Assembly: GCA_965240325.2 (NCBI GenBank)
Contig: OZ251240.1
Coordinates: 930,001-994,000 of the forward strand
Direction: 5' to 3'
Source: Rebecca billardiae RCC1528
Taxonomy: Eukaryota; Protista; Haptophyta
Length of the DNA stretch: 64,000 nt
Shown one piece after another: positions 5,647-14,188 of the stretch (positions are counted from its first letter, which is position 1; every line of letters begins with the position of its first letter). Position numbers and translations under genes: made by a program. Under the pieces are notes generated by a model that did not search any database, was not told the DNA's origin, and saw nothing but the letters and a program-made list of their open reading frames with translations.

Positions 5647-6026
5647 TAGTTCAGAAGTTTTTACCCGGGCCTGATGAGTGATGACTGATGAGCAACCCGC
5701 GCTGGCGATACCGCCATTTATCTTAATCATATTTTGATGACAATGATGGCCGTATGGTGAATATTGACGGATTGACGATATCAACAGTTTAAGAGCTACT
5801 GAGTTCGGCTCAGTCAATGAACCTTTCTCAGACTCTGGCGTATTCGATGGCCGTCCGCCTTTGTAAGGAGTTGGTGGTCCTTTGACGACCGTAGCTTTCG
5901 CACCGTACCTCCCTTCCTCCTAATAAGTACTGCCTCCGTGTGAAAATGGTGTGAAGCTTCGCGGAAGGCGCCGGAGCGGGGCGCTGAGAGGGGGCCGCGC
6001 GCCAGGGTCTCTTTCCCTTGGGCGCA

Positions 6027-9000
6027 ATGCGGAGCTTGTGGCCGCGCCTCCAGCGGCGCCCGGAGATCGTGTTGATCACTGATCCCGGTCCCGATCCGGA
6101 CGACGCCAAGACCTTGCTCATCCTCGCCACCCTCCACCGCCGCGGCGTGCTCGGCCTCCGCGCCGTTGTTTGTAACGGCGGCGGAGAGCCTGCGGCGCGG
6201 GCGAGGCTCGCGCTCTGCCTGCTGCGGCACTTGGGGGTGGACGACGTTCCGGTGGGCGTGGGCTCGGCAGGCGTGCCTTCGCGGCCCGAGCCCCACGAGT
6301 ATATGCTCCAGGGCTACGACGACGTTGAGCCCGCCGACCTCGCCGAGGGCAGCGCCCTGCTGCGCGCGACGCTCGGCGCTGCTCGCGCGCGGCAGCTGAC
6401 GGTCGTGTGCATCAGCGGGCTGCGCGACTTTGCGGATGTCTTCCTCAAGGCACCCGAGCTCCTCGCGAGCGTGGGCGAGGTGGCTATCCAGGGCGGCCTC
6501 GAGCGCGCAGACGGCACGCCCTGGGGCTGGGCGCCTGACACGAGCGTGAACAACAGTGCGCGCCGCTCGCGAGCGCTGTGCGGGCGGCGCCGCTCGCGGG
6601 CGCCGGCCGGCCCGCCATCTCGCCGAGCGCGAATCGTGCGCCGCGACCAACGGTTGCCCCTCCTGTGCCCCCCCCGCGCGCGCCCCCCGCGTGCCAGCCT
6701 TCGACGCAGCCGCGGCGGCAACCGTGTATGATGGCTGCTTCGGGCGGGGCATTCCGATGTCGGTCGTCAGCCGCGAGGCGGTTCCGCTCGTGCCGATGCA
6801 GCTTGCGCGCTCGTTCGCCGTGCGGATGGACTGCCCCGTGGTGCGCCGCCGCGCGAGCCTCGCGCTGCATCCGGCCACCGCCGCCGAGCGCGCAGCGCGA
6901 CACGCCGACATGCCGCGCGCGGGCGCCGCTGCTGCGCGCCGCCGCCGCTGCGCGCCGCCGCCGCTGGGCATCCTGGCTGCTGCTGACGCGTGCGCGTGTG
7001 CGTGCCTGTGCCTGCGCGCGCTCGGGCGGCCCTGGCTGCTCGCGCGCAGATGCACTACCTCGCCTCGGCGCAGTTCCTCGGACTGGTCGGCCTCTGGCAG
7101 CGGCTGTGCCGCGCGCAGCTGCCCGCGCGCTGCACCAAGCAGTGGTTCTTTGAGACCTTCTGCGCGGTCGGGCCCGCCGAGTTTGCGCAGAAGCGGCTGG
7201 ACGCGCTCGGCGAGGACGACGACATCCTGCCGCACCTCAACGGCTTCGTCAAACCGTGCGCGCCGCGCGGGACGGCGCGCTCCGCGCCGCGCGCCGCGGG
7301 ACGCGCCGCGCGCCGCCGGCCGAGCTGGGCCGCCTGCCATGCCCGCCCGCCCCTCCGCCCGTGCCGAGGCCCTCGCTCGCTCCCGCGCCGCGCCGCGCCC
7401 GCCGCGCCCGCCTGCGCGCGCGGGGGGGCACCGCAGGTACGACGTGGTTGCGCTGATGGCGGTGCTGCCGAGCGTGCGGCAGGCGGTCGCGCAGAGCGGC
7501 GGCGAGGTGCGCGTGCGCGGCGTGAGCCACCGGCTTCTGATCAGCCCGGAGCAGTTGGTGCCGCACGAGGCGGTGCTGTGGCTGCTGCGCTCGACGTTCC
7601 ACGACGTGGTCGCGCTGACGGCCGAGGCCGCGAGCGCGCGCGCGGGCGCGCACGACGTCGGCAGCTCGTGGCTCGGCGCCGGCGCGCGCGCGCGGCTGCC
7701 GAGCACGGTGCTTGGGCACGGGGGCGGGGCGCACTCGCGAGCGGCGGTCGCGCCGCGATCGCCCTCGTCGCGCAGCTCCTCGAGACACTCGCAGCGCAGC
7801 AGCGCGCACGCCAAGGGCAGCAGGGCGCCGCGGCTCTCGGCTGAGCCGATGCAGCCGCCTCCGCTTGGGCCGGGCGCGAGCTCCGCCTCCTCAGCTGTCA
7901 CCTCAGCTGGCAGCGCCGAGGAGGCGGGGGAGGGCGCGCGCGGCCGGCGGCGCGGGAGCAGGGCGGTGCCGAGCTCGCCGCCGCCGCACTCGCCACGCGA
8001 GATCGCCGCGCTCCTCGGCGCGGCGCACGAGGCCGCGACCGGCCTGAACCGCGGCGTGGCCGCGTGCTTGCTCTGCGCGGCCGTGAGCATCATGGCGGTG
8101 GCCGCGGTCGTCGCCATCGCCATCCTCACCTCGCTGGGCGGGGGCGGGGAGGGTGCGTCTCAGGAGGTGGAGTCGGCGGCGGCAGCGAGCGCGCTCAGCG
8201 CGCCGCTGCTGCAGATTGGCTTTAACGGCGCGAGCGTGCTGTGCGTGCTCGCGCTGCAGCCGGTCGAGGCGCAGCGCGCGCTGGTGCTGGCGAGCGCGCT
8301 GCTGATCGGCGGCATCTCCGTCGGCCTCGTCACCTCCGAGCTGATCGCGCGCGCGCCCGGCGCGCGCGGCGCTGCTGACATCCTAGTCAAGCCAGACTGG
8401 AGCGCGGGGCAGGCGACGTTTGCATCCGTGGGGCACGCGAGCTGGGCGCTGTCCGGGCTGGCGATGCTCGTGGCGGCCGCGCGGCTGCACACGCGGTGCG
8501 CGCGGCTGCTGCGCGCCGTGTGGCTCTGCCTCGCGTACAGGCTCGTCCTCACGTACGCCGCCATCGCTGGGTATCACTGTGTCTCATTTGCCGAGGCGGA
8601 GGCGGAGGCGGCCGGCCGCGCGCGCTCGGGCGGCGCGGCCGTGCTCGCCGCCATGCTGGCCATCGACGCGCTCGGCCTCGGGCTCGGGCTGAACATGCTT
8701 CGCCCGGCCGCGCGCGCGCGCGTGCAGTACGCAGTGGGCCGCGCGCTCGGCCGCGCCTCGCCGCTCGCCGCACTCGACGCACTCGCGGGCGGCGCGGGCG
8801 CCGTGGTGCGCGCGCGGCGGCACGGCGGCGCGCGCCGCGCATCGGCGCGCCGCAGCCGAGGCGGCGCGACTGGGCTCAGTGACACGGAGCGCGTGCGCCG
8901 CGCGCTGGCAGTCTTCCAGGGCCTCGCGCTCAGCGCCGAGGCGCTCGACGCCGCGTGCGATGCGCTCGTGCACGCGCGCGCGCGCGCGCGCGCCGTGCAC

Positions 9001-10107
9001 CCCAACCGCTACCGCGACGGCAGCGACGACGACGGCGACGGCGGTGGCTCCGGCTGGGGCGCGCGCGGCGCGGGCTCCTGGCGCCGATCGTCCGCGTCCG
9101 ACGGGTCGGGCCGGGCCGGCCAGGCCGACGGCGGCATCGCGCGCGCCGTGCGGCTGCTGCTGGGAGGGCCCGGTCGCAGCGGCGGCCTCGGCGCCAAGCA
9201 CGCAGCCTTCAACCGCGCTCGCGCCGCGCCGCACCCGCACACGCGCCCGTCGCTCGACTTCAGCTCAGTGATGAGTGCCAAGGCACTGCTGCAGGAAGCG
9301 GCGGCGCAGCGCGCGGCCGCGGGCGGCGGCGGCGGCGGCGCGCGCGGCGCAGCGGCCGCCGAGCGCGCGGCCTCGCCCCCGGTCGTCGACGCGTACGTCG
9401 TGCACGCCCTCGCGGACTCGGGCGCGGGCAAGGGCGAGGCGCTGCGCCGCTGGGCCGCCGAGTTTGAACGGCTCGAGGGCCGCGCGCCGACGGTCTGGAT
9501 CGACGTGCTCTGTGCAGACCCCGCGCTCACGCCGGAAGAGCTGCTCGCGCACACGCCCATCCACCTCGCGCGCGCGCGCCGGCTGCTGCTGCTCGCCGGG
9601 CCGCACCTGTGCGACTGCACGTGGGCGGCGTGCGTCCTCTTCGCGTGGCGAGCGCTCGGCGGCTCGGCCGACACGGCGGACGTGGCTCTCATCCCCGCGC
9701 ACGCCGGCGGCGCGCCCGGCGAGACGGTGGCCGCATTCGACGCTTTCCACGTGCTGCGCACGCACGCGATGCGCCGGGCGGTGGCAGAGGCGGACGGCGG
9801 CGCGGACGAGCCGGCGCGCCCGCACGCGCTCGTCGAGCCGACGCGCCCGCACGCGCTCGCCGACGACGTGCACGACGTGCTGCGCCACGCGATCGAGCTG
9901 GCCGGCGTGCACGCATTCAACGACGCGGTGCACGCGCACGTCCCGCGCGTGCGCGGCGCCGCGGACGCGATGCAGCGCGCGCACGCGGATGCGCCGTCGG
10001 CGCCGCCGACGCCACCGACGACGACGAGCGCCGCTGTCATCCCGAGCGCGGGTGAGCCGCTAGGACATCGCGTGCATACGCGCCTAGAGGCGGCGGAGGA
10101 GCCCTGA
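6027..10107 (+). CDS. Fusion protein: IU-nucleoside-hydrolase-like domain + ~6 TM helices + TIR-like domain
   Basis: Exons 6027-6555, 6698-6840, 7050-7255, 7437-10107 join in frame via GT-AG introns. Hydrolase motifs: IVLITDPGPDPDD, VVCISGLRDFA, IQGG..PDTSVNNTFD, KPYDVVAL. Hydrophobic segments at ~8050-8700. TIR-like segment: VDAYVVHA..WAAEF..TVWIDVLC..PIHLARARRLLLLAGP..W. Confidence 0.75.

Positions 10108-11132: not shown

Positions 11133-11212
<80 letters not shown>
11133..11212. repeat. (AT)n microsatellite (further short AT runs at ~11408-11444 and 11586-11651)
   Basis: Directly visible perfect dinucleotide run. Confidence 0.95.
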
Positions 11213-11215
<3 letters not shown>

Positions 11216-11406
11216 CGACGTGGTATGCAACGGGCAGGCGTCAGAGTCAGCAAGCTGTAGCAGCAGATCGAGCAGCAGAGACAAACACCAGGATCAGCGC
11301 TCCTCGCCGTCGTCCCCCCCCTCATAGTCGCCCATCACTCCATCGCCGAGCGGAAGCTCGACGCACCGTCTGGCGTCGACGCGCACGCGCCACCGCGGTG
11401 GTCGCG

Positions 11407-11446
<40 letters not shown>

Positions 11447-11792
11447 TCGATCAAATATACACGCGATGGGGTGCTGTCAGATCGGCCACGCCGCGACTGC
11501 GTGAGCCGCCGTGAGCGTAGACCTGCGCGCTGACTCAGCAGCGGCTCTGACGGTCTGACGCCCGCCATATCGTCATCATCAGTACATATATATATATATA
11601 TATTATATTGCTGCTGATGATGACATGCATGCATCACATATATATATATATTCACGCGCGACGATATATGCGCGCGCTGGCTCGGATGCGACGAGACACG
11701 AGTGACGGGCCGCGCACGCTGCTCGTCATCGTCATTCGACGTTCGTGACGATGAACGTAAGCGTGAATAAGATCGATCGACATCGGCGGTCT

Positions 11793-14188
11793 TCATCCGG
11801 TCCCACCAGCGCGGGTCATAGCTCTCCGAATGGGTGACGCGATGGTAATCCTGAAGCTTCCCGCCTTGAGCGCTTGCCACGACTCGACTGAGCCCGCGGT
11901 CTGCGCACACACGCCGGCGAGGGGCGGCCGGGCGGCCGGGCGGAGTGTCAGACAGGCAGTGCGTCAGCCGGGCCCACCGGGCGTGTTCAGACCCGGCGCC
12001 CCTCTCCCGTGGGCATGCGGGTGCTCTACAGCCATGCGCGCGCGCACGCCGCGCACGCGCCGCGCCCCCCGCGCGCGCTCGCGCGGGCAGCGATGCACGG
12101 GTGGAGGCGGGTGAAGTACTCACCTCCCGGTGTAGGAGGACGGCCACGGCCACGGCCAGCGCGGCCGAGAACGCCGCGGAGAGGCGAAGCAGCACCAGCA
12201 CCGCGACGGACGAGGCGCCGATGCAGGCCTGCAGGGTAGGACCGCGCACGCACGCCGCGCGCCGGCTCAGCCGCGCGCGCCAGTGCGTGCGTCCGCGCGC
12301 GGCCACGCGCGCGCGCGCGCGCACCCCGGCGAGCCCGACGCCACAGCCAGCGGCGAGGAGGGTGACCGAGGCGGACAGCTGGCCGATGCGGTGCGCGTCG
12401 ACGCTGCCGAAGAGCTGGCACCACAGCGGGCCGGGCACGAGGGCACACGTACTCACCAGCGCGCCGCTGAGTGCGCCCCACGCGCGCGCCCCGCCCCCCG
12501 AGCCCGTCTGCCCCGCGGACGCCAGAGCGAGCGCGAGCGCGTCCAGTGCGAGCGCGCAGCAGACGAAGACGTGCTTGCGCCGGAACGCGTCGAGCAGCAG
12601 GCCGATGGCGGCGGCCGCCGCGGCCGCGCCGCCGCCGACGGTCGCGAGCCAAGCAAAGGGGGAGACTCCGGACGGCAGAAGCTTCGGGTGCATGAAGAAC
12701 AGGAGCGTCGCGTGCGCGCGCAGCGTGAGGAGCGCGAGCTGCGCCCACGGGGCGGTCGCGCGCACGCGCACACCGCGCACACACCAGGGCTCGGCAGCGA
12801 GTGAGCTCGGCAAGCCGACGGACGCGCGCGCGGTCGGTGGTCAGTCATGCACTCATGCGGGCGCATGCGCTCAGGGCGCGGCGCCCGGGCAGCGTGCGGA
12901 GAGGCGCGAAGACGCTGCCTCCACCCCCTACCCCCCTGCACTCGGCCGTCCGGCGCGCGAGCGGGCCCGCTCCCGGGCGGCCCTGCGCGCCCGCCGCGCA
13001 GAGCACGCATACACACTATACCTGCGCGAGCCAAAATTTGGCCGAGCGGACTGCGTCGTGCACGGACCCAACTGCGTGCGGCAAGTCTGTGAGCTCGAGG
13101 CCCTCGTCGCCCGCGCCGTGGTGCGGCGCGGAGAGCGCCGCGCCGTCGGGCACCTGCCCGTACGCGCTCGGCGGCCGCGGCATGAGCAGCAGCAGCACGG
13201 GCACGCCGATGAGCGCCGCCAGCGCCGCCGCGCGCCCAAAGCTGGCGCGCCACCCGCCTGCGCTGCTGAGCGCGTCCGAGCGCGCGAGAGCTGGCACCAG
13301 CCACAGCGTGACGAGGGAGGTGGTGACGGCGACGGCCGTGTCGACGACGCGTCGGCGCGAGCGCCACCAGCCGTGCAGCGCGGACGTGCTCAGCGGCGTG
13401 AGCACGCCGCACCCCACCAGCTTGCACACACACACGCCCACGCCCACGCCGCCCGCGCCCGAGGCGGTCGCGACGAGCAGCATGGCTGCAAAGAGCGCGC
13501 ACGCACCCGCGAGCCCGGCGAGGCCCGGCGCGACGCGCGCGTGCGCGCCGGCCAGGAGCGGCGCGAGGAGCGCGGCGAAGACGTGCGCCAGCGCCAGCGC
13601 GCGCGCGAGCGCCGGCTCGGCGCACTTGAGCGACGACGCCGCCTGCTTGAGGACGCTCGCGATCGCCAGGTCTCCCGCCGGAGACTCGAGCGCGAGCGCG
13701 ACCACCGCGACGAGCGCGACGACCCAGCCGTAGAAGACGCCGCGCGCGGAGAGGATTGGCACGATGAACGGCACGGCGGAGACGCCCTCGCACAGCAGGC
13801 GCTCGTCGCCCATCCCCGACACGTCGTTGCGCGGTGCACGCACCGCGGCCGACCACGATCGCCACCGCCGCTCGATGTGGCCCATCTCGCGCGCGGTCAT
13901 GCCCCAGTCGTCCGGGACCTCGTCGATGCCGCGGGCCACTTGGCGTGCGCGCCCAATCCCGCCACCCACACCGCTCGCCTGCGTCGACAGCTTGCTCATC
14001 GCGTCGCGTCCGCTCGCCGCCCAGCGCGCCCAGCGACTGGGCGGCTTGCCGCTCCCTGCGGCGTCCGCGTCGATCTGGACATCGTCGAAGCCGGCGGGCG
14101 TCTCGGCGGATTCCGCGATCGGTACGTTCTCGGAGGCCTCACCCTCGTCCTCTTGCGCTCCCGCCGCCACCTTCGTGTAGCTGCTCAT
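11793..14188 (-). CDS. Major facilitator superfamily transporter (intron-containing; internal boundaries approximate)
   Basis: ATG 14188 (MSSYTKV). FYGWVVALVAVVAL, GWRASFGRAAAL, VHDAVRSAKFWL, IGLLLDAFRRKHV and LWCQLFG typify MFS_1 (OFA/MCT-like) proteins. Donors at 13021 and 12123; last exon after GTGTGCGCAG ends at TGA 11793. Confidence 0.7.

Follow-up and report, generated by a model that had tools for sequence, protein, structure and literature searches.

A predicted membrane fusion of a XopQ/HopQ1-type hydrolase and a divergent TIR-like domain in the haptophyte Rebecca billardiae

Does a single algal gene join a nucleoside-hydrolase fold to a TIR domain through a set of membrane helices and, if so, what would its product do? 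The question is raised by a locus at 6027-10107 on the plus strand of a 64,000-nucleotide stretch of DNA from Rebecca billardiae RCC1528 (assembly GCA_965240325.2, contig OZ251240.1, positions 930,001 to 994,000; hereafter the window). A preliminary description of this DNA had read the locus as a four-exon gene in which an inosine-uridine (IU)-type nucleosidase and a TIR domain of the NAD+ glycohydrolase kind flank about six helices. Comparison with homologues confirmed a real four-exon gene for a membrane fusion protein, with a predicted product of 1182 amino acids. Both enzymatic assignments were revised. The N-terminal domain is, judged by its motifs and nearest relatives, of the XopQ/HopQ1 type and not an ordinary inosine-uridine enzyme, and the C-terminal domain is, in a structure model, a divergent TIR/HET-type domain with a TIR fold, for which a role as NAD+ glycohydrolase is unlikely in this copy. 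As to function, we give about an even chance to the protein being a membrane-anchored hydrolase of an ADP-ribose (ADPR)-type TIR signal that carries a docking or scaffold-type TIR domain, a mechanism reached by inference.

Gene structure of the fusion

The locus bears introns and lies in very GC-rich DNA (0.58-0.83 per 2 kb in the window). In the final model, exons at 6027-6555, 6698-6840, 7050-7255 and 7437-10107 join into one unbroken reading frame through three GTGCGC donors paired with CAG acceptors. The parts of the gene, all on the plus strand, are as follows.

6027..6555, plus strand: exon 1, with the start codon, the first 176 hydrolase residues and the first base of codon 177; PF01156 at 7.5e-9, XopQ 7jlu_B at 4.5e-7; donor GTGCGC at 6556
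6081..6104, plus strand: predicted calcium-binding Asp cluster D19-x3-D23-x-D25-D26; translation TDPGPDPDDA, aligned with XopQ FTDPNKDPDD
6698..6840, plus strand: exon 2 with the corrected acceptor, hydrolase residues 177-224, FD..AA..Y block; gapless homologue alignment, tblastn match of P0158 starting at 6700
7050..7255, plus strand: exon 3, hydrolase residues 225-293 with L236, L239, W256 and F261; placed by the P0106-XopQ 4kl0 and window-P0106 alignments
7437..7635, plus strand: start of exon 4, last ~65 hydrolase residues with Y294-D295; translation YDVVALMAVLP, aligned with XopQ LYDPLTLL
7636..8052, plus strand: linker 1, residues 360-498, Ser/Arg/Ala/Pro-rich and of low complexity; third-position GC of 0.91, as in coding sequence; no Pfam match
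8053..8700, plus strand: membrane block of six hydrophobic segments, residues 499-714; hydropathy, 16-member alignment, charge bias
8701..9369, plus strand: linker 2, residues 715-937; helix 6 is followed by a conserved amphipathic stretch and then by Gly/Ala/Arg-rich low complexity; no Pfam match
9370..9966, plus strand: TIR/HET-like domain, residues 938-1136; AlphaFold2, VIA-align, Foldseek, family profile against the PDB
9634..9636, plus strand: Val1026 at the family's WCxxE glutamate position; translation TWAACVLFAW
9967..10107, plus strand: C-terminal tail and stop codon; the open reading frame (ORF) ends at 10107

The four exons in one frame had been described correctly. For exon 2, a start at 6710 (acceptor 6709/6710) was rejected, as it costs the alignment four residues of the NNxFD..AA..Y block that the homologues conserve. 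A CAG acceptor 12 bases upstream (6697/6698) closes the gap; the frame is kept by either site, and 6698 was preferred because it alone preserves the block. The exon 2 match of homologues aligned to the window by tblastn begins at 6700. The spliced protein aligned without gaps over all three junctions with 11 homologues, among them P0009, the product of an MMETSP transcript, and P0028, from a Pavlovales genome, and tblastn of P0028 and the transcript-derived P0158 onto the window returned the same four blocks in contiguous protein coordinates. The two in-frame CAG acceptors lie 12 bases apart (window 6697-6710), and use of the second would remove four residues including the conserved FD, so that alternative splicing at 6710 could give a crippled hydrolase.

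Base composition followed the same model. Throughout the coding sequence, linkers included, GC at codon position 3 was 0.90-0.94, apart from 0.80 in the last 46 codons; intron 1 showed no codon periodicity (0.83/0.83/0.83 by codon position), and GC dropped to 0.67 downstream of the gene. The last exon by itself is a single ORF that holds the last ~65 hydrolase residues (from YDVVALM), the hydrophobic block and the TIR-like domain, and the fusion is therefore independent of splicing, a point already made in the preliminary description. That one gene encodes both a nucleoside-hydrolase and a TIR fold, with about six helices between them, was borne out by the homologue alignment, by AlphaFold and VIA-align, and by a block alignment of 16 family members.

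A hydrolase domain of XopQ/HopQ1 type

Exon 1 matched the Pfam family IU_nuc_hydro (PF01156) at 36.1 bits (cut-off 34.2; E 7.5e-9; profile positions 3-149 of 297), as did 13 of the 55 homologues scanned, and the spliced N-terminus matched homologues at 1e-117. The nearest solved structures to exon 1 were XopQ entries (4kl0/4p5f/7jlu; best 7jlu_B, 4.5e-7), with classical nucleoside hydrolases at 0.009 or worse. The contrast was sharper for the homologue P0106, whose domain aligns without gaps to that of the window protein: XopQ was found in the PDB at 8.7e-26 over 307 residues, and a classical nucleoside hydrolase at 0.007. The sequence TDPGPDPDD at 6078-6104 (residues 18-26) reads as the calcium motif DXXXDXDD, the modified form that replaces DXDXXXDD in HopQ1-like proteins (PMC11685791). 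Because of this motif and because the best solved relatives are XopQ, we assign the domain to the XopQ/HopQ1 type.

XopQ numbering was placed on the P0106-XopQ alignment with an offset of 81 and checked by the identities L342, L345, W361 and F366. The corresponding residues are listed below.

XopQ D116: D19 in this protein
XopQ D120: D23 in this protein
XopQ D122 and D123: D25 and D26 in this protein
XopQ D399 (HopQ1 D384): D295 in this protein
XopQ Asn pair after Y279 (NN ribose motif): N175 and N176 in this protein
XopQ L342: L236 in this protein
XopQ L345: L239 in this protein
XopQ W361: W256 in this protein
XopQ F366: F261 in this protein
XopQ Y279: V174 in this protein, and Val in most aligned members

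The catalytic Asp pair D23 and D295 is thus present. The XopQ crystal structure is quoted as contacting ADP-ribose through L342, L345, W361, F366 and Y279 (PMC11185476), and four of these five contacts are kept here (L236, L239, W256 and F261). By these residues the domain looks like a competent XopQ-type enzyme with one pocket difference.

The assignment changes the expected chemistry. XopQ and HopQ1 do not cleave common nucleosides, and XopQ makes a large closing movement when it binds ADP-ribose (PMC8910321). Both enzymes hydrolyse 2'cADPR to ADPR, and the bond reported for XopQ is the O-glycosidic bond of 2'cADPR, an immune signal that TIR domains produce, and not a bond in nucleosides; XopQ D120N and HopQ1 D105N/D384N are inactive mutants (Roth et al., 2026 preprint, 10.64898/2026.06.15.732069).

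The IU_nuc_hydro match above threshold would also agree with a plain salvage enzyme, a hydrolase of purine or pyrimidine nucleosides that is tethered to the membrane and carries an unrelated adaptor. IU-type nucleoside hydrolases carry His-Asp where this protein has Tyr-Asp, and its motif is the non-canonical DXXXDXDD in a domain far closer to XopQ than to the classical enzymes. Given also the inactivity of XopQ and HopQ1 on common nucleosides (PMC8910321), we regard a salvage enzyme as very improbable.

The fusion sets the protein apart from the XopQ/HopQ1 effectors of Xanthomonas and Pseudomonas (PDB 4KL0, 4P5F, 7JLU). It shares with them the branch of the hydrolase fold, the DXXXDXDD motif, the late Asp (D295), the NN ribose motif and four of the five ADP-ribose contacts. 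In contrast to them it is encoded by a eukaryotic, intron-bearing gene, has no secretion signal region, carries Val for XopQ Tyr279 and continues into six helices and a TIR-like domain. Piechocki et al. (2018, PMC6019455) report that heterokont and haptophyte algae have HopQ1-like proteins whose calcium motif is non-canonical; the searched text of that paper treats the hydrolase domain only, and the words 'transmembrane' and 'TIR' are absent from it.

The TIR-like domain and the membrane block

The motifs by which a TIR-like order had been recognized in the last exon (DAYVVHA, WAAEF, VWIDVLC and PIHLARARRLLLLAGP), like the Asp-rich motif of exon 1, were all found at the places given for them; TWAACVLFAW lies at 9619-9648. 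Profile and PDB sequence searches with the C-terminal domain of this copy (Pfam at E<=10, including TIR, TIR_2 and HET PF06985) gave no match, and of the two profiles named beforehand for the protein, PF01156 thus matched above its cut-off whereas TIR_2 (PF13676) did not match this copy. An exhaustive HMMER search with the domain found 982 relatives at E<=1e-3, 168 of them at E<=1e-10, a family that is mostly haptophyte. Among 115 relatives, weak matches below threshold were seen to TIR_2 in 27 and to HET in 23 (best HET 4.3e-4). A word-index search with the whole last exon gave no match, probably because it was swamped by low-complexity words, and with the TIR part alone it found two proteins. 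PADLOC defence models matched neither the hydrolase nor the TIR-like domain.

Structure comparison placed the domain more firmly. A single-sequence AlphaFold model was unusable (predicted local distance difference test, pLDDT, 42), and the alignment of 115 sequences was needed; with it, AlphaFold2 gave a pLDDT of 89.4, a predicted template modelling score of 0.85 and the strand-helix order typical of TIR. Foldseek returned TIR domains first (RUN1, RPS4, SARM1, MyD88 and SPARTA, with a probability of ~1.0 for RUN1, SARM1 and MyD88), and the best 50 entries in VIA-align were all TIR domains (Z 10.8-8.3, root mean square deviation 2.6-4.0 over 91-139 residues). In the Atlas, haptophyte clusters came first (template modelling (TM) scores 0.69-0.76), then bacterial ThsB_TIR/TIR_2 proteins and plant TIR-NB-ARC proteins. 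The family profile found the TIR domains of TLR15 (0.005) and SIGIRR (0.02) in the PDB, and aligned family LWCvvEL with TLR15 WCQYEL. The TIR fold suspected from the order of motifs was therefore recovered by structure search.

The active-site glutamate is a different matter. At the WCxxE column, E is found in 78 of 115 family domains and in 43 of the 68 proteins that carry both a hydrolase and a TIR-like domain; the window copy has V1026 at this column and Ala at the neighbouring Cys (TWAACVLFAW). The other near-invariant positions of the TIR family (D6, W42, D44, C47, D49, G76 and P77) are kept. TIR enzymes that lose this Glu no longer act as NADases, as with SARM1 E642 and in plant TIRs, and V1026 in its place therefore makes NADase activity of this copy unlikely, against the NAD+ glycohydrolase first proposed. 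The protein might otherwise have been both maker and breaker of a signal, if the TIR-like domain were active as a NADase or cyclase and its product were degraded or processed by the hydrolase. Fusion of a TIR domain to the type of enzyme that cleaves a TIR product fits such logic, two thirds of the family keep the WCxxE glutamate, and in this copy the fold and almost every other conserved position are intact; the Val and Ala at the decisive positions leave it only a slim chance here.

Relative to catalytic TIRs (SARM1, the plant proteins RUN1, RPP1 and RPS4, bacterial ThsB and the SPARTA TIR-APAZ protein), the domain has the same fold (Z 8-11 over 105-139 residues) and the same order of strands and helices. 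It differs in an identity of 6-14 %, in the absence of a Pfam TIR match, in the Val for the catalytic Glu and in a helical extension added at its C-terminus (~190 residues for the whole domain). The family blocks of W-x-D-x-x-C-x-D/Q and WCxxE type resemble those of HET (PF06985), a domain of fungi that is related to TIR and drives cell death, and to which the weak matches in 23 of the 115 relatives point. All of these matches, however, lie far below Pfam thresholds, this copy has none, and taxon and partner domains differ.

Between the two domains, hydropathy of residues 499-714 showed five clear segments and one weaker, and the alignment of the block in 16 family members showed six conserved hydrophobic columns with a conserved basic stretch after the sixth. 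Conservation of the block lies in the hydropathy pattern only. No signal peptide was found, and lysine plus arginine counts along the segments, taken from the N-terminal side, were 7, 0, 0, 3, 3, 2 and 5 (a sum of 15 on the in-side against 5 on the out-side). Because of the lack of a signal peptide, the six helices and this charge bias, the topology is probably N-in/C-in with both soluble domains cytosolic, which agrees with their earlier placement on one side of the membrane. As for the receptor that the protein was first suggested to be, a ligand-binding outer domain does not exist, the outer loops having 16-21 residues.

No known family accounts for the block. Pfam recognized none for it in 55 full-length homologues; on the window protein at E<=10 it found nothing for linker 2, and for the end of linker 1 with the membrane block only DUF7672 at 0.34. 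Atlas feature and structure searches with the block returned haptophyte hypothetical proteins only, at TM scores below 0.5, so that neither profile nor structure matched the six helices to a known channel or transporter family, and phmmer of the block and linker 2 against the fetched homologues found no match. These results bear on a ligand-gated device, in which a six-helix channel or transporter would be gated by an ADPR-type ligand that the XopQ-like domain binds and does not cleave, TRPM2 with its NUDT9-like domain being the comparison. The conserved six helices and the strong closing of XopQ on ADP-ribose (PMC8910321) favour such a device. In addition to the missing family match, the loop between helices 5 and 6 has 16 residues and is not conserved, and the retained catalytic Asp suggests turnover over mere binding; we hold gating to be quite unlikely.

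Recurrence, proposed function and surroundings

The fusion is not peculiar to one locus. Hydrolase and TIR-like domain occurred together in 68 fetched proteins, from Diacronema lutheri, Pavlovales sp. CCMP2436, MMETSP transcripts and metagenomes, which answers in the affirmative whether other algae share the architecture; the gene family is expanded in pavlovophyte (haptophyte) algae. Many of the 68 are fragments that begin inside the last exon, as expected from prokaryote-type gene calling on intron-bearing contigs. The product of the window gene itself was not among the fetched proteins, the best identity being ~57 % over the hydrolase domain. Hydropathy profiles of 24 hydrolase-plus-TIR members all showed a hydrophobic block between the domains, except that in P0110 it precedes the TIR-like domain. 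P0110 has a permuted order: about five helices, a TIR-like domain with the Glu, a XopQ-like hydrolase and one more helix. It is encoded by one uninterrupted, intron-less ORF of 947 codons (L001, 3001-5844) on an 18,978-base contig. The existence of two domain orders argues that hydrolase and TIR-like domain are functionally linked and were not joined by accident.

Three further observations concern individual members. The neighbours of P0110 are a fibronectin-III protein and unannotated ORFs. Four D. lutheri models (P0034, P0167, P0173 and P0177) lack internal or N-terminal pieces of the hydrolase, P0034 skipping the counterpart of residues 52-136, which suggests missed exons in the public annotation. 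P0165 of Pavlovales sp. CCMP2436 (1450 amino acids) has ~585 extra residues before its hydrolase domain.

A family of this size raises the alternative that the window gene is a decaying paralogue, one of many copies losing function, its intact frame owed partly to high GC and the rarity of stop codons that comes with it. The glutamate is lost here and in about a third of the hydrolase-fused members as well, and long chance ORFs do occur at this locus, for example one of 771 amino acids in antisense (5814-8129). Against decay, the gene retains the catalytic and pocket residues of the hydrolase (four of five contacts), its three splice sites are canonical, the TIR domain still has the residues that define its fold, codon periodicity is strong over all 1182 codons, and recurrent loss of the Glu beside conserved domains looks like sub-functionalisation. 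Decay is accordingly an unlikely explanation, if a less remote one than gating or a maker-breaker enzyme.

The reading we prefer, a membrane-anchored hydrolase with a docking TIR domain, would work as follows. The chain would run from a XopQ/HopQ1-type, calcium-dependent ribosyl hydrolase through a disordered linker, six membrane helices and a second linker to the TIR-fold domain. Because all the needed Asp residues and four of the five cited contacts are kept, the hydrolase is probably active on an ADP-ribose-type nucleotide; by analogy with XopQ and 2'cADPR, the best candidate substrate would be a cyclic ADPR isomer made by a TIR enzyme. With V1026, the TIR-like domain would serve as an assembly or docking module, probably without cleaving NAD+. 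Docking would bring the hydrolase to membrane TIR assemblies, for example those of Glu-bearing paralogues, where it would end or reshape the signal.

Several points weigh against this reading. The helix count has hydropathy and alignment as its basis, and the hydrolase fold of this copy was assigned by sequence comparison. The position of XopQ Y279 is Val both here (V174) and in most aligned family members, so the substrate may differ from 2'cADPR. Pfam matches to TIR or HET are lacking for the C-terminal domain. Support for a single transcript comes wholly from relatives, in the form of homologous transcripts and of JGI contigs that extend little beyond their own coding sequence.

A wider proposal is possible, though we think it doubtful: haptophytes would run membrane TIR signalling with cyclic-ADPR-type messengers, XopQ-like hydrolases would be the native off-switch or converter, and Glu-less copies would be terminators that dock on active TIRs. 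Both halves of the pairing have separate precedents. Multi-helix membrane TIR proteins of Gephyrocapsa huxleyi are induced on virus infection and were proposed to be receptor-like (PMC12489294). They resemble the window protein in having, in a haptophyte, TIR-fold domains after N-terminal membrane helices; they differ from this copy in keeping the Glu, and the word 'nucleoside' is absent from that paper, which therefore reports no hydrolase domain. In the Roth et al. preprint (10.64898/2026.06.15.732069), the terms 'alga', 'fusion' and 'eukaryot' do not occur. The literature searched for a hydrolase-membrane-TIR fusion yielded no paper, in line with the preliminary description, which knew of none. 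HopQ1-like algal proteins and haptophyte membrane TIR proteins are each known separately.

For two decades no substrate of XopQ and HopQ1 was known; the 2026 preprint then showed cleavage of 2'cADPR, which plant TIR domains make. That nature has fused the two domains, in many paralogues and in two orders, is evidence at the genome level that they share a chemistry, and it comes from an unrelated lineage. The fusion points to membrane TIR-type nucleotide signalling in marine phytoplankton, a group in which antiviral immunity has hardly been studied, and the family offers natural variants with and without the TIR glutamate, ready for testing. If the wider proposal is true, the two-order fusion would serve as a 'Rosetta stone', an independent line of evidence for the evolution of the HopQ1-like clan alongside eukaryotic TIR signalling, and the bacterial effectors would seem to be copies of a host-type regulator. 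The message of this copy is narrower: an apparently intact hydrolase with a TIR domain that is probably non-catalytic.

Other features lie over or near the gene. The antisense ORF of 771 codons (window 5814-8129, minus strand) overlaps it and has a very high content of Ala and Arg. It is most likely no gene but a side effect of the coding strand, with its GC-rich third codon positions. The spacer beyond the gene is lower in GC and contains, at about 11150-11290, some 1 kb past the stop codon, a long microsatellite of (TA)n type that translates as IYIYIY on both strands. Further downstream, a 492-codon ORF (11335-12813, minus strand) has several hydrophobic stretches at its start and may be a neighbouring membrane-protein gene.

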